From NCBI RefSeq assembly GCF_964204865.1, contig NC_135253.1, positions 6,758,001 through 6,822,000 on the forward strand: 64,000 nt of DNA. Reading direction: 5' to 3'. Below the pieces are notes generated by a model. That model did not search any database. It had not been told where the DNA came from and saw only the letters and a list, made by a program, of their open reading frames with translations. A program made the translations under genes and the position numbers. This DNA comes from Styela clava (taxonomy: Eukaryota). Of this stretch, positions 10,519 to 64,000 are shown one piece after another. Positions within the stretch are counted from its first letter, which is position 1, and each line of letters starts with the position of its first letter.

Positions 10519-13500
10519 ATGTCGTGGATTTTTGAGTTTTTGCACTCAATTCTGAGAAAAAGAATCAAATTTTTGATTATCGGAACCCGCTTCTTGCTAG
10601 TTCTTACAATCTTCTTATGTGGACTATTATCCTCTACCGGGGATAATTACCGGGAAAAAGGAGATATAATCGTCCAACAACCGCAACACTTTCCAAGCAG
10701 TATTGGAGTGTTGAATGAATCGTACGTACACTGGATTAATGTCAGAAACGATAATACTTGGATGCCGTTTGACGAATTATGCAGGACATTTAACGGGTGG
10801 TCTCTCTGTTGGTGGATTGTCATCGTCCCAATGATCTTTAGAACGGTAAGATGGTTAGTTATTTCACATAATAAAAACAAGTTCTCAATATCAGCCATTG
10901 CTGAACTTAAAGAACAAGCTTCCGACGTCATTATAAAGTACAAAATTCGAAGAAGGTTGTACAAAATTTTGAAGCTGCTTGTAAGAATTTGGTTTCGGCG
11001 TTTCCGAGGCTATAAAAAATCGAGAAAAATTGCTAAAATGAGAAAAGCGGCTTGGAAGTATGTTCGTCAGGCTCAGATGCGACAACATAGAATTGCATCA
11101 AAAAAGTCAGGACAGAGAAACGGCAAATTCATTGGGAATGGCTTCCAAGTGCCTGCGAGTAAACATTGTTGCATAAAATCTAAAGAACCCAATACTGATG
11201 CGAGTTTGTTGGGAAAGAGAGAAAGCGAGGAAAAACTGACCAGTTCAATGCATGAAGCATTACTGGATAACGATGGTTTGAATGAAAAAAATGAAACATC
11301 AACAGATAATCATATACTAGGTGATAGAATCATTGTTAAACAACAATCATCATCCGAAAATCGGTCGATTCGGAGACTTGCCCAAGAAGCAACGTTACCA
11401 CATGTGGGCGAAACAAATGCGTTTCAAAATTCTTCTGAGGATCAGCCAGATGAAAATTTGGGATTAGAAAGTCTTTTCGGTCAACAACCAGAAGACAAAG
11501 TTATTGAAAATTTGAATGTGCTCGAACCTACTGATGAAAATATGAAGAATTTTGAGATTGGCGAAGTTTCGAGTGTGCCAGAACAAACACATGAAACAAA
11601 TTCTAGTCGATGTAATTCAGATATGTATCTTTCTGATACACCGAGTTTTGATTCTCAAAATACCTCAGATTGTGATTTACCATCACATCTTGAATGGACT
11701 GAAAGCGAAAACGATTCTGACAACTTTTATAAGTATGAAGATAATTACCGTCGTGTAGCTTCCTCTTCGTCATTTGAAAGGCCAACAACTCTCCCGGAAT
11801 ATTTGAAACAACAAATATCTAAACAAAACGATTGTGTTTATGATGGAACGTCATACGGAAGCATTGTATATAGTGATGATTCATTCCCGTCTTCCATATC
11901 AATCAGATCTTATAATTCAAAAATTGAAGAATCGAGTTTGGAAGAAATATCGTTTGAATGCCCTCAACGTATGCCGTCCGTAACTTCGGGAATTTTCCTC
12001 CCTACATCGGGAAGCAAATTCGAGCAAATTCAAAATGGGAAATATCTCCCGATGCCTAATTCGCAAGTTTGCAAAGCATTAAAAATCAAAATACCCAGCG
12101 TCAGAAGAGACAGTTGCTCGGAATATTCCGAGTCAGATTCTCGGTCAGCGAGTAGCAAATTATCATCAAGTGCTGATGTAGATTTATCGACAGCAGGAAA
12201 AAATGCATCTCCTCAAAACCAGGATAATTGTGACAGTATCAACAAGACAGAACTTGAGTCAAATGAAAAGTTGGAAGAGTTTGACGAAAATTCTTGCACA
12301 TCCAGTATTGTGATGAAAATGCAGCAAGAAAAAATGTATTCAAAAAAGGAAGAAACTATAGTCAGTAACGTGAGTATTAAAATGGAATTTGTTGTCAAAT
12401 TTGTCGCGAGACTATTTTACTGCAAACCTCAGAAATAGATGGATGGATTAGGTTTTCATTTGGAAAATATTTAGATCTGTAGGAGGCTTGAATGATAAAA
12501 TAGATTATTTATATGATACATTTTATAACATAGCAGATTTTAGTACAGCTTTGGTATGTCTTTCATGATACAAACGTTGTAGTACATAAATATAAGTTAT
12601 TTTTCATTGATTATTATTGCAGAAAAACAATGGATCTGTTCTGAAGTACAATCTTGAAACTCTCCGTCATAATTTATCACGAATGGATGACAAACAACGA
12701 AAAGAATTTATTTTCAAATATGAAGTTGACACGTTACCACATGTGGGCGAAACAAATGCGTTTCAAAATTCTTCTGGGGATCAGCCAGATGAAAATTTAG
12801 GATTAGAAAGTCTTTTCGGTCAACAACCAGAAGACAAAGTTATTGAAAATTTGAATGTGCTCGAACCTACTGATGAAAATATGAAGAATTTTGAGATTGG
12901 CGAAGTTTCGAGTGTGCTAGAACAATCACATGAAACAAATTCTAGCCGGTGTAATTCAGATATGTATCATTCTGATACATCAAGTTTTGATTCTCAAAAT
13001 ACTTCAGATTGTGATTTACCATCAAATCTTGAATGGACTGAAAGCGGAAACGATTCTGACAACTTTTATAAATATGAAGATAATTACCGTCGTGTAGCTT
13101 CTTCTTCGTCATTTGAAAGGCCAACAACTCTCCCGGAATATTTGAAACGACAAATATCTAAACAAAACGATTGTGTCTATGATGGAACGTCATACGGAAG
13201 CATTGTATATAGTGATGATTCATTCCCGTCTTCCATATCAATCAGATCTTATAATTCAAAAATTGAAGAATCGAGTTTGGAAGAAATATCGTTTGAATGC
13301 CCTCAACGTATGCCGTTCGTAAGTTCGGGTATTTTCCTCCCTACATCAGGAAGAAAATTCAAGCAAATTCAAAATGGGAAATATCTCCCTATGCCTAATT
13401 CGCAAGTTTGCAAAGCATTAAAAATCAAAATACCCAGCGTCAGAAGAGACAGTTCCTCGGAATATTCCGACCCAGATTCTCGGTCAGCGAGGAGCAAATT

Positions 13501-15332
13501 ATCATCAAGTGCTGATGTAGATTTATCGACAGCAGAAAAAAATACATCTCCTCGAAACCAGGATAATTGTGACAGTATCAACAAGACAAAACTTACGTCA
13601 AATGAAAAATTGGAAGAGTTTGACCAAAATTCTTGCACATCCAGTATTGTGAGGAAAATGCAGCAAGAGAAAGTGTATTCAAAAAAGGAGGAAACTATAG
13701 TCAGTAACGTGAGTATTAAAATGGGATTTATTGTCAAATTTGTCGCGAGATTATTTTACTGCAAACCTCAGAAATAGATGGATTAGCTCCTGAAAATATC
13801 TCATAATATATACTAGTTTCATAAAAATTATTTGGAACATTGATCTAATCTGTCTCGTTTATGTTATTTGGGCGTTGGGTACTCGCGTCAATACTTAAAA
13901 AATTCTCGCAAGCCAAATAAAATTATAGAAGGGAATGACACACATTTAGGTTTTCATTTGAAAAATATTTAGATCTGTACAAGGCTTGAATAACAAAATA
14001 GATTATTTATATTATACATTTTATAATTTGCATATTTAGTTCAGCTTCGATAATGTTTCATGATACAAACGTTGTAGTACATATAAGTTATTTTTCATTG
14101 ATTATTAATTCAGAGAAACAATGGATCTGATCTGAAACACAATCTTGAAGCTCTCCGTCGTAATTTATCACGAATGAATGAAAAACAACAAAGAGAATTC
14201 ATTTTCAAATATGAAGTTGACTCGTATGAGGTGAGAAAAATCTACAGTAATCACTGCTTGGAATTTTTCACTTTTTTTTAGGTTATTTCACCACAGAATA
14301 GAATATTTTAGAAACACAATTCACAAATAAAATCTTTCATTGAATAAATTGTATGCGAACGAATTTAACCTGTTTCTTGAGGATTCGTTTTGGTTTGTTC
14401 ATTTGGTACCAAATGTGTATTATTGATCCGACAAAAATGACGTAGAAATTAATTGAACTGAAAGATCCACGGGTTCAGTCGTTCTATCACTTATATATAT
14501 ATCTAAATAGCATACATTAATCAGGAATTACTGACAAGAAATCTATTTTGGTAACCCCGCGTGGAATTGTTGTAATGTATATACCCACTCATAAAAATGT
14601 TTTTCGAAACTGGCAAATACTGAAAACACTTTGCATCAATACTTGAAAATATATATTTTTCAGAACTTGATAGAATTAGAAGAGGAAAAAAACACACTCG
14701 TTGAAAGGATAAAATCTTTAGAGAAATCCCGGATCAAAACAAAAAATCCGTTTCGTTTTTTTCGAAACGTCATTCGATCAAAGTTTAGTTCGAAATCAAC
14801 AAAAAAGAACAATGTTTTAAAGAATCATCTCAAGGCGTCGTTAGCTGATCTTCAAATTAGAATGGAACTGGAACAAAAACAAAACAAAGAATGTAGAAAA
14901 ATTCTTCGTCAAATCGAGGAAGATTACGAACGAAAAATCCGAATCGGATCTCAAACATTGCTGCATCTTAAACATTACATAGTTAAGGACGTCATACGAG
15001 CAATGAAACTTCGAAAACAAGTTAAAAACCATCAAAACAGACCAGGATGTAACATCCATTGTCTCGATTGTATTTCTGGTTTGCATTCCAGAAAGACGTG
15101 TGAAAAATTCATTCCAAATTTGAGTAATTCAATTTTAACTGAGGAAGACGGATTTCTGTCAACTTGTCCAATTACCCAACTCATAAACTGTAAATACAAA
15201 GAGTTAAATTTGGATGATAATGAGCTAACTATTGAATTTAGATTGGCTGAACTCAAAAAGTTTCAAAAACAAGTACAATCGGCATTATTTAAAAAATCCT
15301 ATTTAAAGAGTGGCCAATTTATATTGCCATAA
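10519..15332 (+). CDS. Uncharacterised protein, predicted 4 exons (10519-12369, 12623-13708, 14114-14230, 14664-15332), ~1240 aa: two N-terminal hydrophobic segments, basic helix, duplicated acidic/Ser-rich region, C-terminal coiled coil
   Basis: Long ORFs 10474-12438, 12617-13777 and 14631-15332 join through phase-0 sites AAC|GTGAGT (12370, 13709), GAG|GTGAGA (14231) and acceptors CAG| (12622, 14113, 14663). No family recognised. Confidence 0.7.
11392..14221 (+). repeat. Intragenic tandem duplication: unit 1 11392-12730, unit 2 12731-14221
   Basis: Both units start ACGTTACCACATGTGGGCGAAAC and end AAATATGAAGTTGAC. Coding parts are near-identical; the unit-1 intron lacks ~150 bp present in the unit-2 intron. 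Confidence 0.95.
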
Positions 15333-16440: not shown

Positions 16441-17778
16441 AGGTGAAAAATATCGGGTTACTTCTTAAATTTTTGCAGTATTGAGGTCTATTTAATTATT
16501 CTCATTTACCCGGGTCTAGATGTTGCTCTCGATTTGGTAATTGTGTCAAGCGGTAGGACCAAAACTAAAATCAAAACCGGAACCGGTTCATTGATACAGA
16601 TTGAATATACCTTCATACTCACCTCAATGACCACCACGAAACAATTCGTGACGAGTTGCAAAATGAAAAAGAAAATATTAAATTTTAACACCTGATGTCC
16701 TGCATGTGCGAATTAAAGATCCCTGATATATGTACACGAATACAAAAATAATTATATTTTAAGTAATTCACGTTGAAAAGTTTATTATTCTTTCCTAAAT
16801 TATATATGTACTTTGTGTACTTTCGGCGTGTGAAAACTAAATTACTGACGGACTGACTATTAAACATTTGGCTTTTCAGTAATTTTTGAAAAATTAATCA
16901 ATTTCAGTTCTAAAAAATATTTAAAAGACGTTAGTTCCGTGGATGCCGAGTTTCGTATCTTCGCACAATGATTAAATAGATAGTCCGTCCCGCGTTAATG
17001 AATATGAGACAAGTTATGCCGAACCCCAAATTTCCCGAATTAAGTTGGAATGGATAGTACTGGTGGCAGACCCAGGTTTCAAAACCATTATCCTGAACAA
17101 AATTACTATTTTGGTTGTGGTTTCAGCGTGAGCGTCGTCCGATGCGACACTTATCATTCATCAATCATTTCATTTGAGTCTTCTGATAGAGAGCCTAAAT
17201 CAAAACAAAACAAAACCTAAACGGACAAACAGAACTCAGAGATACCGGAACATAATTGATTTTGCTTAAACAAGCAAATAACATAATATTGCAGGCTATC
17301 GTGGGTACGAAAACAAAATCCCTTTAATCACAAATTTAGCAAAATAAGGAATACGTGATGCATTATCGCTCGTACATTAGCAGTCTGAGTTTATTTTTGG
17401 GCCCATATTCCTGCTAACAGTGTTGCAATAAAATTATATTTATAAAGTTACAACATGAGAGCTATGCTCAAATATATGAACACGTAGGATAATATATCAT
17501 CACTTCACCGAAATCCATAGGGTATCCTGCACGAAGATGAACAGTGAAACTGACTACTACCATAGTACCCGTACCCAGTACGGCACAGTTCACCTATTTC
17601 CAAAAAAGTCCCCATAATAAAATACAATAATTATATCTGTGACTGTAGGCCCCGCTTTCGAGAGACTATGCCCCATATTAAAATAAATTGATTATAACTG
17701 TGACTGCAAACCCCGCTTTCAAGAGCTGTTTGGGCTTCCGTCCCTTTCGGCAAAGCGGCACTGTTACACGTACACGTA

Positions 17779-18341
17779 TGTAACGATCAATCTTTCCTTT
17801 TTTAAATAATAACAATGTCATGGTTCATTTAACACCCATTATGACATCACATAGATGTCACGTGACGCGAGCCCGCGTTCGACCGACTCTGACTCAAGGT
17901 CAGCCCGTTGCTTCAGGTTGCGTCTTGCATTTGGCGGCGCCTTTCTAGTTTATGTTTCTGGCTTTGCTTTACCGTCGGTAGATTCCATTTTAGGTGATTA
18001 GCTAGTATGCTGCTTATTTATTTAGTTTGTTGTTAATTCAAGCATGTTTGTCCTACAGATGTAGACTTGTAGTTGGTAGCCCAAAAAATTCTTTAAATAT
18101 ACGGTATACGGCACACGGAATTAGAATATAATTTACAGTACACCGTATTATCTTTCGTCACTCAATAAAAGAACTGGATTAATTGGTTTCAAATAAATTT
18201 AACACATTGCAAGTTAGTGGCAATCATATTGGACGAAGGAATTTAGGAATACAGCCAGCTATATAGTCTACAGGCCGGCCATCTCGGTCGGGACGTATTT
18301 GTCGCCTTCAAATATCATCAGGTTAAAGGGCGTCACTTACA
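17779..18341 (+). repeat. 5' LTR of BEL/Pao element
   Basis: TG...CA termini, AATAAA at 18164, direct repeat of 24629-25191. Confidence 0.97.
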
Positions 18342-18482
18342 TCGTTTAAAGAATTTTGTGGCATTGAGTGGACAAGCCACTCAACGCATTTAGGATTGCC
18401 CAGGCCACAATTCAAGATTGACTTGTACAAATAAATTTCACTGACTGATTATTGTAAATTCATTTCTCTAATCATATCATTT

Positions 18483-21329
18483 ATGATGGCTTCAAACAGT
18501 TCAAGTGCTGATTGGCAAGTTTTTGATGATGCTAAAAGTACTGCATCTAATGGCTCGCATTGCAGCAGGATGTCTAGTGTCAGCCAGCGCTTGGAGCGTG
18601 CTCGTTTAACAAAGTTAAAGTTGGAGGAGATGGAGAATGAAGCCCAGCCCCAAAGACGCAAAGTGGAAATGGATCAAAGAAAAGTGGAAATGGATCAGAA
18701 AAAGGTGGAAATGGAGCAGAAAAAGGTTGAAATGGAGCAGAAAAAGGTTGAAATGGATCAAAGAAAGGTGGAAATGGAGCAGGCAAAGCTTGAAATTGAT
18801 ATTAACTTGTCACGCGCTAAGGCATCCATGATAGATGAGGAATTAGAATCTCTAGCGTCCGCCAGTCGGGCACCTTCATGTGTAGGTTCTATTTCTTCGT
18901 TACGACAAGATGTAACTCAAGTTTCAAATGTGCCTCCCGCAATGCCAAATAATGCATATGGCGAACAAGTTAATGCATGTCTTGATGAAGTTGAACCAGC
19001 GTCAGTTTCTCATGAGCACCAGACCAAGCAAACTCCTTCATTTCAAAGTCATCCTAGCCCACCTATTGCGTCACAAACATACATGAACAAAGATTATCTC
19101 CCTAGCATACAACAAGCAAATCATCCTTATCTTGGTCAGGTTCCCCAGTCGGAACAACAACGCTACTCAGGTGCTGAATACCACTCACCGGGAAGACATA
19201 ACGAGCAATGTAACATTAACCATACTGCTGCGGACAGATATCACCCAGTCTATCAAGCACCACAAGAGATGCAATATAATTCATCTTTTACATACAATAG
19301 CATTCTGCAACCTCAACCAAGAAGACAGGAGTCTAAACATGTTCCTGATAGACAAGTTTTTATGCAAGGTAATCCAACTAGCTATAGCCATGGGCCTACA
19401 CCAGTTTCGGTTGGTGATAACCAAAATTCAATGAGTCTTGCTGATGCTCTGTATTGCATGGCATCTTCAATTAGACAAGGACCTCAAGAAATAGAGAAAT
19501 TTGATGGAGATGCATTGAGTTATCACAGGTTTATTCAAAATTTTGATGATATGTATGATAGTAAAATTGCAGATCCTCGTACTAAACTTAACTATTTGAT
19601 TGATCAATGTACTGGAAAAGCCAGGAAAGCAATCGAATCGTGTATCATTGTAAAACCACCTTTGCAAGGTTATCTTGATGCTCGCTCAATTCTTAAGCAA
19701 CAATTCGGACGAGATTACAAAGTTGTAAACGCATTTATGGATTCACTCAAAAATGGCCCTAGCATAAAGCCACAAGATTCTGAAGCATTATATGATCTTG
19801 CCACACAAATGCGTAATTGTGGTATCATTTTGACAAATTGGGAACATAGTTCTAAGCTTGACAGTCAAGATCTGTTTGACAAAATCTATTTACGACTTCC
19901 AGTACCAATGCAAAGAAAGTTCACAAGACATCATACATCTACTTACAATAGTGACAAAGAACCAACATATCATGATTTGTATAAATTTGTTAATCAATCT
20001 GCAATATTGGCAGATACTAGGCTGAGCCGTCTCACTGCAGAGCAAAATTTGAAGAATAGAAATGCTATGCCAAAAAAGAGCTATAATTCTACCAAGGTGT
20101 CCGCTTATGTCACCCAAACATCACAAGTTAAGTCGTCCAATGTGTTTTCGGATTGTTTACTTTGTGATGGACCCCACAGGTTGTGGAAATTTGAATCCTT
20201 TATCAAGAAGTCTGTTCCAGACCGTACAAAGTTTATTCAGTCAAAAGCTTTATGTTTCAATTGTTTTCGTATCAAGCATGTAGCACGCAACTGTCCCAGT
20301 GACAACCGATGCAAAATTGAGAACTGCGGAAAATTGCACCATTCGCTTCTACACAACCAAGAACGTATCAGACAGGACAAGCCTTCTGATAGAAATGCAG
20401 CAAGTGACACTTCAACTCATGTTGTCAATGGAAGCACTGATGCATCAATTCTCAATTCAAGGAAAAGGGTATATCTCATGATTGTACCGGTTAATGTAAC
20501 TTCGTCAGATGGTTCACACTCTATAAAAACCACTGCACTTCTTGATTATGGCTCAAATGCAACTCTTTGTAAGCTAAGTCTTATGAAGAAACTTAGGGTG
20601 AAAGGGAAGCAAGATTCTTTCACAATTTCCACAGTCAATGGCCTACATAAGCAAAACGGCTACAGATTGGACCTAAATGTTAAGGGTCTACAGAAATATG
20701 ACAAGTTTATGTTGGAAGATGTTCTAGCTGTTGAGTCACTTCCAATACTTTCAGATGGACTTCCTACGAAGGCAGATATACAAAGTTACCGGCATCTTAA
20801 CGGTATTGATTTTCCTGAAATAGGGAATCATGAACCAGAATTATTGATTGGTGCTGATAATTATGAAGCTCTAATAATTCAAGATAGAAGACTAGGAAAA
20901 AAAGGCCAACCTGCAGCTGTTCATACCCCACTTGGATGGACACTCATAGGCAAAGATGTTTCAAGGGTCACCAATGGTATGTCTATCAATTTTGCTAACG
21001 TTGAAAAGGATATTCTTTGTGAACAATTGCAAAAAATGTTTAATTGTGACTTCAGTGAATCTGATTTCACTGAAGAATTTGCACCTTCAATCGAAGATAC
21101 GAGAGCTTTGTCAATCATGGAAAATTCAATATGTAAAGTTGATGGTCACTATCAAATGAGGTTACCATGGAAATGTGAAGAACCACAATTCCCACAGAGT
21201 TATAAATTTGCAAAGAAACGACTTGATTATTTGAAGAGAAAATTTCAACGTGATCCAGAATATTTTGATAAATACAAAGAAAAAATTCATGAATATATTG
21301 ACAATGATTATGCTAAGAAAATACCTTAA
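18483..21329 (+). CDS. BEL/Pao gag-protease part of the polyprotein (ends at a premature TAA near the start of RT)
   Basis: DUF1759-type Gag (EKFDGD...KLNYLIDQCTGKA...LKQQFG); knuckles CLLCDGPH(RLWKF), CFNCFRIKHVARNC, CKIENCGKLHHSLLH; protease ALLDYGSNAT; AVHTPLGW; GHYQMRLPWK. The same frame continues past the TAA as IWYFPHH..KFRLVFDC..SLNNHVLQGPD. Confidence 0.9.
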   Translation: MMASNSSSADWQVFDDAKSTASNGSHCSRMSSVSQRLERARLTKLKLEEMENEAQPQRRKVEMDQRKVEMDQKKVEMEQKKVEMEQKKVEMDQRKVEMEQAKLEIDINLSRAKASMIDEELESLASASRAPSCVGSISSLRQDVTQVSNVPPAMPNNAYGEQVNACLDEVEPASVSHEHQTKQTPSFQSHPSPPIASQTYMNKDYLPSIQQANHPYLGQVPQSEQQRYSGAEYHSPGRHNEQCNINHTAADRYHPVYQAPQEMQYNSSFTYNSILQPQPRRQESKHVPDRQVFMQGNPTSYSHGPTPVSVGDNQNSMSLADALYCMASSIRQGPQEIEKFDGDALSYHRFIQNFDDMYDSKIADPRTKLNYLIDQCTGKARKAIESCIIVKPPLQGYLDARSILKQQFGRDYKVVNAFMDSLKNGPSIKPQDSEALYDLATQMRNCGIILTNWEHSSKLDSQDLFDKIYLRLPVPMQRKFTRHHTSTYNSDKEPTYHDLYKFVNQSAILADTRLSRLTAEQNLKNRNAMPKKSYNSTKVSAYVTQTSQVKSSNVFSDCLLCDGPHRLWKFESFIKKSVPDRTKFIQSKALCFNCFRIKHVARNCPSDNRCKIENCGKLHHSLLHNQERIRQDKPSDRNAASDTSTHVVNGSTDASILNSRKRVYLMIVPVNVTSSDGSHSIKTTALLDYGSNATLCKLSLMKKLRVKGKQDSFTISTVNGLHKQNGYRLDLNVKGLQKYDKFMLEDVLAVESLPILSDGLPTKADIQSYRHLNGIDFPEIGNHEPELLIGADNYEALIIQDRRLGKKGQPAAVHTPLGWTLIGKDVSRVTNGMSINFANVEKDILCEQLQKMFNCDFSESDFTEEFAPSIEDTRALSIMENSICKVDGHYQMRLPWKCEEPQFPQSYKFAKKRLDYLKRKFQRDPEYFDKYKEKIHEYIDNDYAKKIP
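18657..18782 (+). repeat. 6 x 21-bp coding minisatellite in Gag encoding (R/K)KVEM(D/E)Q heptads
   Basis: Units such as AAAAAGGTGGAAATGGAGCAG read directly; in frame. Confidence 0.95.
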
Positions 21330-21510
21330 GACCATGTCCCATCTGATGAAAGGAAGATTTGGTATTTTCCTCATCACTCAACTGGTGAAAAGTTTAGGCT
21401 TGTGTTTGATTGTTCATTCAAGGTGGACAATATCTCTCTCAACAATCATGTATTACAAGGACCAGACCACTGCTCAAATCTTGTTGGAGTTCTAGGAAGA
21501 CATAGCCTTT

Positions 21511-24360
21511 GTGTGTGACATAAAGAGAATGTTTCATCAAGTTAAAGTTCATCCTGATGATTGGGATTCTCTGAGGTTCCTATGGTATCCAAATGATGAC
21601 ATTTCAAAAGAACCTGAATCTTATTTTATGACAAGAAGTCTTTTTGGCCTAACCAGTTCACCCAGTGCAGCTGGATATGCTTTAAAAAGAGCTGCAGTCG
21701 ATAATGAAACAAATGCTAATATTGATGTTTTAAATACTGTGAAAAATAATTTTTATGTTGATGACTGTTTAAAATCTTGTGATTCTTCTCATTGTGCTAT
21801 TGATGTCATTAATCAGTTAGATTGCTTGTTATCTAATGTAGGTTTTCATCTTACCAAGTATCGCAGTAACTGCCGGTCTGTTCTTTCTTCTATTTCAGAT
21901 ATAGACAAAGCTAAAGATAGTTTTTTGGATTTAACACTTGATAAATCATATTGCTCTAAGACACTTGGTATTATGTGGAATAATGTCAGTGACCAGTTCA
22001 CTGTGAAAGTGGACGTAAAGCCAAAGCCTCTCACGAGACGTGGTTGTCTCTCTATGATATCACAAATATATGATCCACTGGGTATGATGCAACCATTCAT
22101 CTTACCAATGAAAAGCCTCATGCAAACTTTATGTGCTCAAGATATTGGATGGGACTCTCCGATCACAACCCGATATGAAGAAATATGGCAAAAATGGGTT
22201 AACGAGCTTCCTAAACTGCAGGAAGTGTCAATGCCCAGATGTTTCAAACCACCAGGATTTAAGACAGACCACATTGAGCTTCATACGTTTTGTGATGCCA
22301 GCCAAGTTGGATATGGTGCAGTAAGTTATTTACGCATGACGTCACAAAATGGTGTTATTCATTGCTCATTTGTTTTGGGAAAATCTCGAGTCACACCCAG
22401 AAAGCAGATTACCATTCCAAGGTTGGAGCTATGTTCTGCTGTACTTGCCGTGAAGCTCAGTCGATTTGTCCTAAAGGAGTTGGAATACAAAGTCAACAAT
22501 GTTTATTACTGGACAGATTCAACTTCGGTGCTCCAGTATCTATCGAATACATCAGCAAGGTATCATGTTTTTGTAGCTAACCGAGTGGCTCAAATCCGCA
22601 ATAGTTCAGCGATTGTTCAATGGAGACATGTAGACACTAAGAATAACCCTGCAGATGTAGCTTCAAGAGGTTTAAGTCCGAGATGCATCGACAAAGCCAT
22701 TTCTTGGTTCAACGCGCCTGAGTTTCTTTGGCATTCTCAGGAACACTGGCCAAAGCGTCCTGAAGTTTTACCTCAAATTTCTGAGAATGATCCTGAAGTC
22801 AAGACTGTCATAAATACAAAGGTTGATGTGGCAAAGGATAATGTCAAGTCTGTATTGTCTATGCTTATGAAGCGCTACTCAAATTATGGGCGACTTCAAA
22901 GGGCAATTGCTTGGATAATACGTTTCACAAAATTCTGCAAAGCAAAGTATTTGCACAAAGTCAAGTTTCAAGGTATAGGCAGATTGAATATTGATGAGCT
23001 GGATTATGCCACTCATGAAATTCTCAGAATCACCCAGCGTGATGTGTTCTCTAAAGAAATGAAGTATCTTGAAATGATTAATAAAGAACATAAGGTTCCA
23101 AAGAGTCAACTTCGTAAAGGTCAATGTCAGTCACTTCAGAATTTATGTCCATTTATCGAAGATGATTTGATGAGAATTGGAGGACGTCTTCAACATTCTT
23201 TGCTACCACTTCATAGCAAACATCAAATAATTCTACCTCAAAATCACCATGTGACAAGATTACTCATCAAAAAGTACCATGAGCAAGAGGGACATAGTGG
23301 CACGTTACATGTTCTTGCAGTCATTCGAGAACGTTACTGGATAATACATGGTCAATCTACTGTTCGCTCTTACCTGAGGAAATGTCTTAAATGCCGAATG
23401 CAAAGAGCAAAGGTCGGCAAACAAGTTATGGCACCTTTGCCTGCCAGCAGGGTAACCCCAGGTCATCCAGCGTATACATGGACTGGAATAGATTATATGG
23501 GGCCAGTCCTAATCAAGCAAAGAAGAAGCACAATAAAGCGATATGTTTGTGTTTTTACATGTATGTCTTCTCGTGCTGTTCATCTCGAAGTTTCACATTC
23601 TTTGGAGACCAATTCGTTTCTAAATGCCTTGGAACGATTTTCAAGTCGTCATATCATGCCAAAGGAGATCTACTGTGACAATGCATCTACATTTGTTGGA
23701 GCCGAACGAGAACTCACGGCTGCAATAAAGTCCTGGAACAATGATAAAGTACACAACTATATGCTTAATCGTGGTGTCAAGTTCATCCACTCACCTCCAC
23801 TTGCTTCCCACCAAGGAGGATGTTGGGAAAGAATTATTAGTACAGTGCGTAAAGTTTTGTATGCACTGGTTGGAGAAAGAGTGCTTGATGATGAAGGCCT
23901 ACAAACGTTTCTGTGCATTGTGGAACGAATCATCAATAATCGTCCTATCACCTCATCCAGTGACGATGCTGCGGATGCTCCCCCTCTAACTCCAAAGATG
24001 CTGTTGATGGGTCAACTTGACTCATCGCTTTCACCTAGAGAGTTCAATCGAGCAGATGGATATCGTAAATCCTGGAAACTAGTCCATCGCTTAGCTGATC
24101 AATTTTGGTCACAATGGATCAAGCAATATCTTCCTCAACTTCAGGCCAGACAAAAGTGGCTCCATCCTGAAAGAAACTTCAAAAAAGGCGATTTAGTTCT
24201 TGTTGTTGATGAAACCACCAAACGAGGATTATGGCCCAAAGGAATAATTAGGGAAACCTTTCCTGATAGTAATGGTCATGTTAGAAGAGTGCGTGTAGAC
24301 ACTGCCTCTTCATCTTTCATCCGTGATATCAGAAAATTGTGCTTCCTAGAGGAATTGTGA
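21511..24360 (+). CDS. BEL/Pao pol (RT-RNase H-integrase), separated from the upstream frame by a frameshifting deletion at ~21494
   Basis: DIKRMFHQV, LFGLTSSP, NFYVDDCL (RT); FCDAS, TIPRLEL, WTDS, NPADVASRG (Pao RNase H); H..GH..C..C, GIDYMGP, YCDNASTF, WERII (IN). No true start codon. Confidence 0.92.
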   Translation: MCDIKRMFHQVKVHPDDWDSLRFLWYPNDDISKEPESYFMTRSLFGLTSSPSAAGYALKRAAVDNETNANIDVLNTVKNNFYVDDCLKSCDSSHCAIDVINQLDCLLSNVGFHLTKYRSNCRSVLSSISDIDKAKDSFLDLTLDKSYCSKTLGIMWNNVSDQFTVKVDVKPKPLTRRGCLSMISQIYDPLGMMQPFILPMKSLMQTLCAQDIGWDSPITTRYEEIWQKWVNELPKLQEVSMPRCFKPPGFKTDHIELHTFCDASQVGYGAVSYLRMTSQNGVIHCSFVLGKSRVTPRKQITIPRLELCSAVLAVKLSRFVLKELEYKVNNVYYWTDSTSVLQYLSNTSARYHVFVANRVAQIRNSSAIVQWRHVDTKNNPADVASRGLSPRCIDKAISWFNAPEFLWHSQEHWPKRPEVLPQISENDPEVKTVINTKVDVAKDNVKSVLSMLMKRYSNYGRLQRAIAWIIRFTKFCKAKYLHKVKFQGIGRLNIDELDYATHEILRITQRDVFSKEMKYLEMINKEHKVPKSQLRKGQCQSLQNLCPFIEDDLMRIGGRLQHSLLPLHSKHQIILPQNHHVTRLLIKKYHEQEGHSGTLHVLAVIRERYWIIHGQSTVRSYLRKCLKCRMQRAKVGKQVMAPLPASRVTPGHPAYTWTGIDYMGPVLIKQRRSTIKRYVCVFTCMSSRAVHLEVSHSLETNSFLNALERFSSRHIMPKEIYCDNASTFVGAERELTAAIKSWNNDKVHNYMLNRGVKFIHSPPLASHQGGCWERIISTVRKVLYALVGERVLDDEGLQTFLCIVERIINNRPITSSSDDAADAPPLTPKMLLMGQLDSSLSPREFNRADGYRKSWKLVHRLADQFWSQWIKQYLPQLQARQKWLHPERNFKKGDLVLVVDETTKRGLWPKGIIRETFPDSNGHVRRVRVDTASSSFIRDIRKLCFLEEL

Positions 24361-24628
24361 AGCATTGATTGCAATTACCAAATGTTACAATATGTTTAAT
24401 TCGAGGCTTTGCTCTATGAGCTTTATTGAGGCTATTTAGACAATTTTGGCTTATTGGTCGCTAAGACATGCATATATGTATATATTCATCTTTGTACTAT
24501 TCCATTAATTTGTGGAGTGATGTTTCATGAGTTTCGTTCGATTACTAGTTATGTTTTTATGTGATTTTTTGATCGTTTTGTTTTTGAAATACCTTTCCAC
24601 AGTCCCGGTCAAGTTATTGGGGGCGGTA

Positions 24629-25191
24629 TGTAACGATCAATCTTTCCCTTTTTAAATAATAACAATGTCATGGTTCATTTAACACCCATTATGACATCAC
24701 ATAGATGTCACGTGACGCGAGCCCGCGTTCGACCGACTCTGACTCAAGGTCAGCCCGTTGCTTCAGGTTGCGTCTTGCATTTGGCGGCGCCTTTCTAGTT
24801 TATGTTTCTGGCTTTGCTTTACCGTCGGTAGATTCCATTTTAGGTCATTAGCTAGTATGCTGCTTATTTATTTAGTTTGTTGTCAATTCAAGCATGTTTG
24901 TCCTACAGATGTAGACTTGTAGTTGGTAGCCCAAAAAATTCTTTAAATATACGGTATACGGCACACGGAATTAGAATATAATTTACAGTACACCGTATTA
25001 TCTTTCGTCACTCAATAAAAGAACTGGATTAATTGGTTTCAAATAAATTTAACACATTGCAAGTTAGTGGCAATCATATTGGACGAAGGAATTTAGGAAT
25101 ACAGCCAGCTATATAGTCTACAGGCCGGCCATCTCGGTCGGGACGTATTTGTCGCCTTCAAATATCATCAGGTTAAAGGGCGTCACTTACA
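24629..25191 (+). repeat. 3' LTR of BEL/Pao element
   Basis: Direct repeat of 17779-18341 with 3 substitutions; followed by TSD ACGTA. Confidence 0.97.
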
Positions 25192-26544
25192 ACGTATTTT
25201 CCGGGTTCTGTGACGATTCCGTTTCAACGTGAATTGAAATACCAACTGATTCGAGTTACTACGGTATCCTAACAGTAAATACCGCAGTCTACAAATATAT
25301 GAACACCAAGCGAAGCAGTAGTTCACAACATTACGCGTACCGGACCGGTATCCTCTAAAATCTTCCGAGTTTTTGAGCAAGAATTTCCAGAATTGGCCGT
25401 CACGCTTGACGGATTAAAAATCGTGTTTCCATGATTGAAAAGTAATACAGCGAAATGTTTGATGAAATATTAAATCTCATAGGATTCACAGATAGTTTGA
25501 AAGAAAATAACCTTTTGGAGAAAAATTCCATCTTTCCCCACTGAAAATTTCTATGCAATTGGTCCAGTATTCGAAGAGAAAACCGATTTTTTAATGATAA
25601 TGATGACGAAAAACAACAACAACTTTATTATTGAAACGATGGTTATGTCCACTTACGTGTCCAATAACCAACAACTTGACGTATGAGACCAAATGATCGA
25701 TTGGTCGATCGAAACCATCAGAAATTGTCGAACTCCTGCCTCGTTATGCTTCTGACCAGTGACTGTTATTTGCACAGTCCAATGCGTTTGTCGTACATCA
25801 TGCAGTGTCGTGAAGTACATAGCAGTGATAGCAGATACTGGTTAAATGTGATGGTAATTGTGTTTGCAAAGAGTGAAATGTAGCGAGAAAGATGGGATAA
25901 GCTAAATTGAAATGCTGTTTAATAATATAAGCATACCGATTTACGGTTAAAGATCGTACAAGCGTTTATTGGACAGATTTTCAAAAATATGATTTTAGCT
26001 TTTTGTACATTGTGATTAGCGCCAATGAACTAACACGAGGATCTCAGTCAAATACTGCAGATACTAGCTCGTTGTTGAAGTATGCTATTGTCCATTTCTC
26101 ATTACCGCGACACGAATAACAAACCTGTCGGGAAGCAATAGGGTAGCTCGTTGAGTCAGCACTGAATATTGACTCTTGATCAGCCACCCTACAGTATAGT
26201 TCGCTGCGACTGCGAGTATGCTATATTGAAGATATGATTATTTTCATGTTTACACAACTCTAATGTTTACTATAGTTGAGGGTAATCTGGTATTTAAAAG
26301 CCTTATTTAAAAAATGCAAAAATGTCGACTTTCATCTCATCCGATTATGTCATTGCATACGATTAACTCGTTTTTGAATGTGCGAATATTATATCATTCT
26401 TAATTACAGATTTGGAGCGGTTTGTCTGCTGTAGAAAGTTATTCATTGTATCAATAGTCAAAATGTCTTTAGTGTAGAATTGCTAGGTAAATTCTACAGT
26501 ACGAAGACACCTGGAACGTTTGTATACAGATATTGATGAATGCA

Positions 26545-61460: not shown

Positions 61461-64000
61461 TGCGCAGTCTGGCTTCATTGTGAGAATATTTTCGAGGCAT
61501 CTTTGAGACTTGCCTGGGTCACAATTTCTATTTTTTTTTCAAATAGTTCTATTGAGGTTGTTGTGGGAGCTAGCGATTCCCACTTCCCAGCAATCTTTCG
61601 TTGTGGGAAGACCATTGTAATGGACGCAGGTCGCATTTTTGGTATTTCTTGTGTTTCTTCTTTATTGTATTCGAGAGAGTGAGATTAGTTATGGTGCAAT
61701 ATATGTGTTTACCTTGCACGCTATTGGCTGCGGCAATCGACCGACGACGACTCTTGCTCTGTAGTTAGTATCTTGTATTACTCTCTGTTGTGCGTGAGCG
61801 AGGCGAGCTAGTTATGGTGCAATCTGCTATTATCTACTTTGCCGGTCTTTTCAGGATTTAGACTTAGAGTGTATGTATTATGAGTAGTCTTAGATTACTG
61901 TTAGCTTATTATTTAGTAGGAATCATTATGTTAGGATATGCTGGGATTTATCTGTGTGTATTTACCAATTGTTTTTTATTTAGTTATTTAATCCCGGAAT
62001 CTATCACTATTTGGAATCAAGCTCATGCTTTCAAACTTTAACTCACACCTTTAACTGTTTAATCTACAAATTGGCTATTCTCTACGTGGGAGTGTTATCG
62101 CCGTATTGTTCTGTCGTGTATTCGAGTTGGAATATTACAACGAAGTTCTTTCAGTTGGTGTGATCTTGTGAGGTGTTGGGGTTCAAAAGTTCAGTAGTTC
62201 AAGACGGTGAGTGGGGACTGAATGTTACGAGCTTGCATTGCAAATTGTAGGAGAACCGGGACGTGGTACTTGATAGTGGTTGGGTATAAACGTAGCGCAG
62301 TTTGAGACTCCAATCCGTGCAATTTCAAACAATTTCAAATAATTAGATTGTCTCCTGGACAATTTCAAATAGAAGTGATTGTCTCCTACTGTCGACAATT
62401 TCAAATATATAGTTATTCTACAATTTGGAGAGAGATCTTTTGTCACATACCGTGGACAACTTCAAAGACAGAAAAAAGCTAATCAAATTGCAAGATGTCA
62501 GATGAGATGGTATTGTTTCTGAACTGAGAATGAGAAAGAAAAGATCTCGTGCGGGATATGAAAGCCACTTTACAAAGCTCCTGAAAACCACTGAGAATCT
62601 AATGCTGGATCAACAGAAATACAAAGAGGTTGTGGGTGCAAAAGAAGCTGTGGATGCTGCATTTGAGAACTGTATTGAAGCCTGTGAAAACTTTCGAAAT
62701 TCTGTCAGTACCGGTCTGGAAATGGACAAGATGGAGTTTGAAGAAGCTACTGTAAAGTGTGATGAAATTGCCAGGAAGAAAGCGGTATGTGATAAATTAT
62801 ATGGTGAATATTTGCAGCGATACAATGCTGCTGCCAGCAGGAATAACTCAGTGTCTAGTAAATCAAGAAAAACAAGTGTTGCTTCTCATCGAAGTAAATC
62901 TTCAAATGAATCATCTGTGAGATCATCAGTAGCTGCCAAAGCTCGACTGGATGCTAGGCTAGCTGATCTTCAAGCTAAACGTGAACGCGAACAAGCAAAT
63001 TTGGATAAAGAGAAATCAAACATAGAAAAAAGAGCCTTAGAAACAGAACTTGACATCAGAAATGTAGAAAAACGTGCACTTGACGCAGAATATCTTGCAG
63101 AAGAAGCAAAATTGATTGCTCAGAGTTTTGAACTAGCTGAAGGATCTATCATGAGTTCTAATTTGGATAGCAATCAACAATTGGAGTACGCAAGTTGTGC
63201 TTCTGAAGATGTTAGTGGGACAGAGCCACTGACTAAACTCAAATTTGTGAACATTTATGAACCTAAATCTAATGTGCCTTTTATGAAGACTGAGCCCTTA
63301 TCATTTGCGTTGCAGTCGATTCCTGAAAGAAAAACAGAGAACATTCCTATATCAAAGCCTACTGTGGTTTCCCCTGTAATGAAAGACTTTTCTGATGTTC
63401 GTGTGCCATTGATGACTTCAACATTGACCAGTGCTATAAACATGTCTAACCCTGAACTGCTGAGATCGTCCGAGGTTCCTGTTACATCGTTTGTACAATC
63501 CGGTAATGAGTAGCATGCCGGTGACGAGTTATGCCCCGGCCACAGGTGGTGTGTCGGTGGCGAGACATTTTCCAGTCACGAGTGGCGTGTCTGGAATGGA
63601 TGAATCTCAACGTGTGAGCAGTGTTCCTGTCCAGATGTTTACGATTCGAGTGTACCAGTGACATATTTGAGCTGTTCTGCAGTTCCTGTGTATCCGGTGA
63701 TTCCGACATCAACGGGTGAACATCTGAAAGTTGATCTACCGGAGTTTGATGGTGATCCATAGATATATCCGGAGTTCCTGAGTGAATTTACAGAAGCAGT
63801 TGATGTGGAAAATATACCAGCAAATCGTAAGCTTATCATTTATTTAAAATGTACGAAATGCATTGCCAGAGAGGCAATTCGGTAATGTGTAATTACTAAA
63901 CCATGGGAAAGGGGTTATAAGCGGGCCCTGGATATTCTAAATGAGAGGTTTGGCAGAAAACATATGAATATAGATTCCTTTACGAAAGAATTGATTGAAG
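61461..64000 (+). mobile_element. Second, degenerate BEL/Pao LTR retrotransposon (different family), truncated by the window end; candidate 5' LTR 61461-62299 (alternative 61616-62139)
   Basis: Gag homology downstream; candidate LTR has TGCGC...GCGCA termini. The 3' LTR is not in the window, so the boundaries are provisional. Confidence 0.7.
62530..64000 (+). pseudogene. Disrupted BEL/Pao gag
   Basis: Coiled-coil/Ser-rich ORF 62530-63513, then DLPEFDGDP*IYPEF...RKLIIYLKCTKCIAREAIR*CVITKP..GYKRALDILNERFG (stops at 63760-63762 and 63883-63885), which aligns with the Gag of the first element. Confidence 0.85.

Follow-up and report, generated by a model that had tools for sequence, protein, structure and literature searches.

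The long terminal repeat (LTR) retrotransposon Tf1 of Schizosaccharomyces pombe primes reverse transcription with its own RNA: the primer is the first 11 nt of the mRNA, cut by RNase H, and this mechanism is proven (PMC6317226, PMC5445492). Tf1 is the only element for which self-priming has been proven; it is predicted for the Tf1/sushi group, the Tcn1 clade and the TAR lineage of plant copia elements, and the published criterion for a self-primer is a complementarity of at least 10 bp beginning 0–5 bp after the 5′ LTR (PMC6317226). Some authors have proposed self-priming as the older state (PMC3601003). The Belpaoviridae, which comprise the BEL/Pao elements, are described in the 2021 profile of the International Committee on Taxonomy of Viruses as primed by a host tRNA, with a primer site of 18 nt that pairs with the 3′ terminus of tRNA-Arg or tRNA-Gly (PMC8742986). 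We found no link of Pao with self-priming in the literature searched, an earlier remark in subscription journals being possible; primer sites go unmentioned in a BEL/Pao survey of metazoan genomes and in the Sinbad paper.

Here we analyse a complete LTR retrotransposon of the BEL/Pao type, family A, which spans positions 17779-25191 of a 64,000-nt stretch of the Styela clava genome (the window; assembly G000, C4:6758001-6822000). This element probably primes minus-strand synthesis in the manner of Tf1, taking its own RNA and no host tRNA as primer. The observations behind this reading are (i) the complementarity between the primer-binding position and the element's own LTR, (ii) the position of the two arms, (iii) the recurrence of the arrangement in sister families, (iv) one compensatory change and (v) the lack of any other matching locus.

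Like Tf1 and the Tf1/sushi group (Ty3/Gypsy chromoviruses; also the plant Tcn1 clade), family A is without a tRNA site. In that group ~11 nt just after the 5′ LTR pair perfectly with a segment inside the LTR that lies ahead of the polyadenylation signal, folding back of the RNA closes the R-U5 domain, and the arms differ between families yet stay complementary (PMC6317226, PMC5445492); each of these traits has a counterpart here, the fold-back as a predicted one. The two differ in that family A belongs to another superfamily, with a Pao-type protease (A17), a DUF1759 gag and a DUF5641 integrase tail, and in that the RNA start and RNase H cut are proven for Tf1, whereas the present case is known from sequence, with perfect arms of 9–13 nt. 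With canonical Belpaoviridae (Tas, Pao, BEL) family A shares gene content, LTR structure, polypurine tract, 5-bp target duplication and an animal host, but where those elements carry a tRNA-Arg/Gly site, no TGG-led site lies by the LTR in family A, in its seven sister families or in six metagenome relatives. For the TAR lineage of plant Ty1/copia (Houba, Osr-1), which is of another superfamily and another kingdom, self-priming is likewise predicted by the same sequence criterion and without experiment. By its pol, family A is a BEL/Pao member that by mechanism looks like Tf1.

Primer-binding position and LTR of family A

The LTR-terminal CA (18340-18341) is followed by TCG and then by TTTAAAGAATTTTGTGG (18345-18361), which is the reverse complement of LTR positions 18081-18097 at 16 of 17 nt. 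The longest perfect own-LTR complement, AAAATTCTTTAAA, is a 13-nt core (18085-18097 with 18345-18357) that begins at +4, and both its length and its start lie within the published range for self-primers. A G·U pair between 18098 and 18344 extends the duplex to 2 nt from the LTR edge, which mirrors the 2-nt TA spacer between the polypurine tract (24619-24626) and the 3′ LTR. Because an AATAAA signal (18164-18169) lies downstream, the LTR partner falls upstream of the likely R/U5 border. A preliminary description of the window had reported the LTR end, the 16/17 complement with its 13-nt core, the G·U pair, the AATAAA at 18164, the hairpin at 18364-18384 and the TA spacer, and had proposed priming from the element's own RNA; every one of its coordinates is confirmed, and the proposal gains support from the missing tRNA-type site and from the sister families described below.

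A perfect complement of 13 nt is reached by 0 of 5000 shuffles of the 20 nt 3′ of the LTR and by 1 of 2000 dinucleotide-preserving shuffles of the LTR, and the same 20 nt match the LTRs of the seven other families over at most 7 nt. Both arms are identical in three more 5′ LTR copies of family A (L002-L004), which are 91-93% identical overall; one of them (L002) carries a 2-nt insertion just outside the perfect core. The LTR arm is retained even in LTRs that are only 71-76% identical, where it sits in a conserved block (18038-18105) with both flanks rich in changes and indels. CCAAAAAATTCTTTAAA has 13 exact copies in the genome, mostly at family A LTR copies, and the diverged LTRs L013, L014 and L016 are apparent solo LTRs. 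Among relatives of family A, pol identity drops from 94% straight to 51% without intermediates.

No TGG occurs within 17 nt of the family A LTR (the preliminary description had likewise noted none after the LTR end), so that the CCA of a tRNA 3′ end cannot sit at the primer-site position. Two TGG-led stretches follow at +18 and +27; their 15-nt complements occur in the genome only in family A's own six leaders, and the complement of a tRNA T-loop is absent from both. The 17-mer has its exact complement at four places in the genome, all of them family A primer sites, and genome matches with one mismatch are mostly the family A LTR arm (the 13 exact copies) plus singletons at background level. 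Rfam found no family in 17700-18600. An Rfam tRNA search of the genome, in which 63 of ~33,000 candidates were scored, yielded a Lys-UUU array, Cys and Trp genes, a single SeC-like gene and, on small contigs, AT-rich Gly-UCC genes whose CCA is encoded. A host RNA matching the primer-site region had been named as an outcome that would speak against self-priming: on this point the genome-wide complement search finds no other locus, and the tRNA comparison covered a partial set.

The tRNA genes collected are arranged in several ways. The tRNA-Lys(UUU) array (L051; G000:C2:15.88-15.94 Mb) has 17 genes in 10 kb at a spacing of ~316-1500 nt, with many point variants. A mixed tRNA-Cys/Trp array at C10:6.888-6.926 Mb includes one gene read as SeC(TCA). 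The AT-rich tRNA-Gly(UCC) genes recur approximately every 45 kb on many small contigs (C54, C98, C216 and others; L053-L055) and resemble organellar or bacterial rather than nuclear genes.

Sister families and a compensatory change

BEL/Pao families whose pol is 41-51% identical to that of family A are numerous in the genome, and many have intact frames of ~2000 aa. For representatives of eight distinct families, LTR ends were set from the LTR pair and the target duplication, blind to complementarity; significance was assessed per family with 2000 dinucleotide shuffles and across the eight families by Fisher combination. Family H was left out, its repeat being unlike a complete LTR, as was family I, which showed no LTR pair in the stretches examined. 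A perfect own-LTR complement of 9-13 nt beginning at +3 to +6 is present in seven of the eight families (Table 1), with a combined p of 5e-9, and in six of the eight the own LTR gives the longest match among all eight LTRs. The LTR partner lies at 45-66% of LTR length in every family and 63-86 nt upstream of AATAAA wherever a canonical signal is present. A TGG-led site adjoining the LTR is absent in family A and all seven sister families. The eight families have eight different, unrelated AT-rich primer-site sequences, which points away from a host primer, since tRNA-primed families have a small number of sites in common among them. A search based on RNAduplex energies was dropped as a test: it chose other, GC-richer partners in B, C and G2.

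Table 1. Own-LTR complements 3′ of the 5′ LTR in eight S. clava families and three metagenome relatives
Family or contig	Length (nt)	Sequence	Start	Shuffles reaching this length
A	13	AAAATTCTTTAAA	+4	1/2000
G	13	ACTATTTTTAAAT	+3	2/2000
E	12	CAGTCAATTTAT	+6	3/2000
D	11	TATATTGTAAC	+5	12/2000
L	11	ATTAGTTTTAT	+6	38/2000
B	10	TATTTGTAAT	+3	56/2000
C	9	TTTAGCAAC	+4	66/2000
J	6		+6	1418/2000
L100 (metagenome)	10		+4	4/2000
L064 (metagenome)	9		+10	51/2000
L062 (metagenome)	8		+1	94/2000

A second BEL/Pao element of the window is an old relative of family B, termed B′. It begins at 61617 and runs past the window end, with LTRs 90.6% identical and a target-site duplication (TSD) of ACCAT; its 5′ LTR extends from 61617 to ~62321, the LTR arm lies at 62008-62017 and the primer site at 62332-62341, and the 3′ LTR is L146. 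Copies of family B carry TATTTGTAAT in the LTR and ATTACAAATA at the primer site, whereas B′, represented by L147, L148 and, in the window copy, the 3′ LTR with the primer site, has TATTTGAAAT and ATTTCAAATA in these places, and the arms of B and B′ lie in clearly homologous flanks. In a gapped pattern search of the whole genome, the combination of T in the LTR with A at the primer site was found in six copies, A in the LTR with T at the primer site in three, and mixed types in none. By sequence comparison this T:A to A:T exchange is compensatory, affecting both LTR arm and primer site. In the B′ window copy the 5′ LTR shows a later A-to-G change, with which a G·U pair is still possible, and the LTR-leader junction is rearranged. 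Covariation of the two arms in related families had been singled out in advance as informative, and it is found both in the architecture shared by seven of eight families with unrelated sequences and in the B/B′ pair.

Relatives outside the genome were sought in viral contigs, which yielded none, and in metagenomes, where 79 contigs encode proteins of 40-46% identity and six have cleanly delimited LTR pairs. None of the six has a TGG within 8 nt of the LTR, and three have an own-LTR complement (Table 1). The six share the polypurine tract GGGGCCGG with the Styela families. No poly(A) tail was found on the metagenome contigs of relatives.

Two repeats were seen in leaders of these families. That of the B′ window copy holds repeated CAATTTCAAATA units, and in the J/K/N/O family (L045, L047, L142, L144) the 5′ LTR is directly followed by a tandem array of two or three 23-nt units, GAAGTTATCGAATTTCCGCAAAT and its variants.

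Candidate priming mechanism and alternative explanations

In folds of 18078-18395 the LTR-leader duplex appears in both the minimum free energy (MFE) and the centroid structure and is followed by the 8-bp hairpin (z = -4.8). With an RNA start 0-10 nt upstream of the partner, the pair probability of the duplex is 0.5-0.97 in A, D, E, G2 and L; once 40 more upstream nucleotides are included it falls to ~0 in the same families. TATA-like boxes 22-46 nt upstream of the partner are present in most families, not in A, and constitute weak evidence for a start there because the DNA is AT-rich.

We propose that transcription would start at or a few nucleotides upstream of 18081-18085 and that the first 13-17 nt of the RNA would fold back onto 18345-18361, closing an R-U5 domain of ~260 nt. 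The RNase H of the element would cut after ~18097/18098, and reverse transcriptase would extend the 3′ end so created, copying first the TCG spacer and then U5 and R. Later, plus-strand strong-stop synthesis would copy the primer, so that the primer site would be rewritten in each cycle to match the LTR segment. Such rewriting would keep the arms complementary within a family while families drift apart, and it would explain both the abruptly ending perfect cores of 9-13 nt and the compensatory change. Because plus-strand strong-stop synthesis would copy the primer as far as its 5′ end, a 5′ overhang on the primer should leave a product that fails to match the primer site at the second jump, and the RNA is accordingly expected to start at the partner. 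The scheme predicts that the RNA begins at 18081-18085 and is cut after 18097/18098; the start, the cut and the priming event itself are presumed steps.

Several results weigh against self-priming by this scheme. Family A has no TATA box ~30 nt upstream of 18081; its nearest TATA-like run lies 55-66 nt upstream, which would place the partner ~30 nt inside the RNA and create a 5′ overhang foreign to the Tf1 scheme. The start at the partner is a prediction: the public runs consist of contigs, and those presumed to be RNA contain family A but are not on record as RNA; their contigs break at 18038 and 18341 (variant or branch points), continue through U3-R-U5 and show neither an RNA start nor an RNA end. 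Two old family A copies lack the match, one through expansion of a T-run in the LTR arm (L009), the other interrupted by an insertion (L015). The several copies with the compensatory change reflect a single evolutionary event, and that event belongs to a sister family, not to family A. Three of the six metagenome relatives are without an own-LTR complement, as is, in any convincing form, the J/K/N/O family (6-7 nt, p 0.7). Families B and C are weak when taken alone (p ~0.03), and in this AT-rich sequence matches to foreign LTRs reach 10 nt by chance.

The last of these points, with the failure of J, are what one would expect if the complementarity had arisen by chance in AT-rich sequence. Chance is nevertheless the least credible of the explanations considered, and we regard it as very improbable: the 13 nt of family A are all but unmatched among the shuffles, the combined p over eight families is 5e-9, and chance accounts neither for the constant position of both arms nor for the compensatory change. 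The primer could instead come from a host RNA that is not a complete tRNA 3′ end, namely half a tRNA, a segment from within one or a different small RNA, and the LTR match would then be incidental. Such a primer has precedent, since half-tRNA priming is known in copia-type elements (PMC6317226). Drosophila copia and the plant elements Osser and Bianca, like family A, have no TGG at the start of the primer site. The sites of these elements, however, match an internal segment of tRNA-Met or tRNA-Ile and are common to families, whereas the eight Styela families have eight unrelated sites, each with its own sequence and matched by its own LTR (over only 6 nt in family J). The exact complement of the family A site is confined to family A, near matches are its own LTRs or background singletons, and with the B/B′ change the site follows the LTR instead of an invariant host RNA. 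The tRNAs compared were Lys-UUU, Cys, Trp and a few doubtful ones, so that a pairing of 10-12 nt with an internal tRNA segment or another small RNA keeps some probability and counts against self-priming; on the whole we consider a host primer of this kind improbable.

Pairing between LTR and leader could also be a selected long-range RNA structure with another role, such as packaging, dimerisation or translation control, while priming proceeds by other means. Long-range pairings between U5 and the leader exist in retroviral RNAs, the fold is stable, and conservation and covariation demonstrate a selected pairing, not its purpose. Yet the 3′ arm lies exactly where a primer site is required, 2-5 nt after the LTR-terminal CA and mirroring the spacer of the polypurine tract, the first 60 nt offer no other recognisable primer site, and arms of 9-13 nt match self-primers of the Tf1 type; we judge a purely structural role unlikely, if less so than a host primer. 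The preliminary description had further suggested that cis- or trans-splicing, or cleavage, might set the primer end. It had placed an acceptor-like GTCCTACAG at 18050-18058, a position that we confirm, and splicing at its AG would generate the primer 5′ end. Many tunicate mRNAs are trans-spliced, and the block 18038-18100 is conserved among LTR variants. Nevertheless, no joint or loose end at 18058/18059 was found among the matches listed, sister families share no acceptor at that distance, RNAs that start at least 22 nt before the partner adopt folds other than the duplex in silico, and the conserved block is equally well explained as a core promoter. Splicing at this site is accordingly very improbable, and this part of the earlier proposal is not upheld.

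Element structure and implications for Belpaoviridae

The features of family A are collected in Table 2. The two LTRs of this copy differ at only a few positions. Its polyprotein frame is interrupted between 21327 and 21511, whereas a sister copy has a single open frame of 1971 aa. In Pfam searches, pol matches Peptidase_A17 (PF05380) over the whole model length with E 1.3e-51, the integrase zinc-binding domain (PF17921) and DUF5641 (PF18701) are clear matches, and DUF1759 (PF03564) in gag is a weak one, its 22 bits lying under the cut-off of 25.4. No chromodomain was matched in the Pfam search of the element proteins, and pol is not that of a Ty3/Gypsy chromovirus, as membership of the Tf1/sushi clade would imply. 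The nearest proteins are BEL/Pao polyproteins of animals, the best hits being Styela clava proteins of 93-95% identity, and the Pfam profile is that of BEL/Pao, not Gypsy. Because its two frames carry the Pao protease, the integrase zinc domain, DUF5641 and a weak DUF1759, the element is classified from its sequence as a young BEL/Pao LTR retrotransposon (Belpaoviridae, genus Semotivirus). Priming by a tRNA is a description of the known Belpaoviridae and not the basis of the family, and the pol-based membership of the element stands.

Table 2. Features of the family A element and its flanks in the window
Feature	Position	Strand	Evidence
TSD ACGTA, 5′ copy	17774..17778	+	same 5 nt directly 3′ of 3′ LTR
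5′ LTR, 563 nt, TGTAA...TTACA (TG..CA ends)	17779..18341	+	direct repeat with 24629-25191, 99% identical
LTR partner of primer site, candidate self-primer; perfect core 18085-18097	18081..18097	+	complementarity; conserved down to 71% LTR identity
AATAAA polyadenylation signal	18164..18169	+	sequence
Second AATAAA	18192..18197	+	sequence
TCG spacer from LTR end to paired stretch; G can pair G·U with 18098	18342..18344	+	sequence
Primer-binding position, complement of 18081-18097 at 16/17; perfect core 18345-18357	18345..18361	+	
8-bp hairpin TTGAGTGG / CCACTCAA directly 3′ of primer site	18364..18384	+	in MFE and centroid folds
First open frame of polyprotein, gag region, weak DUF1759 match; stop 21327-21329	18483..21329	+	
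Second open frame: Pao protease (Peptidase_A17), integrase zinc domain, DUF5641	21511..24360	+	
Polypurine tract GGGGGCGG, then TA and 3′ LTR	24619..24626	+	
3′ LTR	24629..25191	+	direct repeat of 5′ LTR
TSD ACGTA, 3′ copy	25192..25196	+	

The polypurine tract, GGGGCCGG or GGGGGCGG, is near-invariant across BEL/Pao families with only 40-50% pol identity, including metagenome relatives from other hosts (L062, L064, L100). Just upstream of the element, at 17448-17487, lies a sequence of ~36-40 nt that is extremely abundant in all runs, with a summed contig depth of ~100,000 in the DNA run; since the contigs diverge on both sides of it, we take it to be a very high-copy short repeat. Direct repeats of two sizes lie at 11392-14225 in the window: those of 300 nt are 96% identical and separated by 1339 nt, those of 148 nt are 90% identical and separated by 1491 nt. 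They may form a tandem or nested repeat structure that has nothing to do with the element.

The start of reverse transcription is a defining step of every LTR element, and a self-priming architecture with covariation in BEL/Pao would extend this mode of priming to a third superfamily and to a chordate relative. We lean slightly towards the view that a lineage of Belpaoviridae, in tunicates and probably in other marine animals, gave up tRNA priming for self-priming of the Tf1 type. Annotation pipelines in which a tRNA-type primer site serves to confirm an LTR element will miss or mislabel these families. If our reading holds, self-priming would be found in all three superfamilies of LTR retrotransposons, either as an ancestral trait or as one that evolved repeatedly, which bears on whether it is the older state (PMC3601003), and the description of the Belpaoviridae as primed by a host tRNA would need revision.
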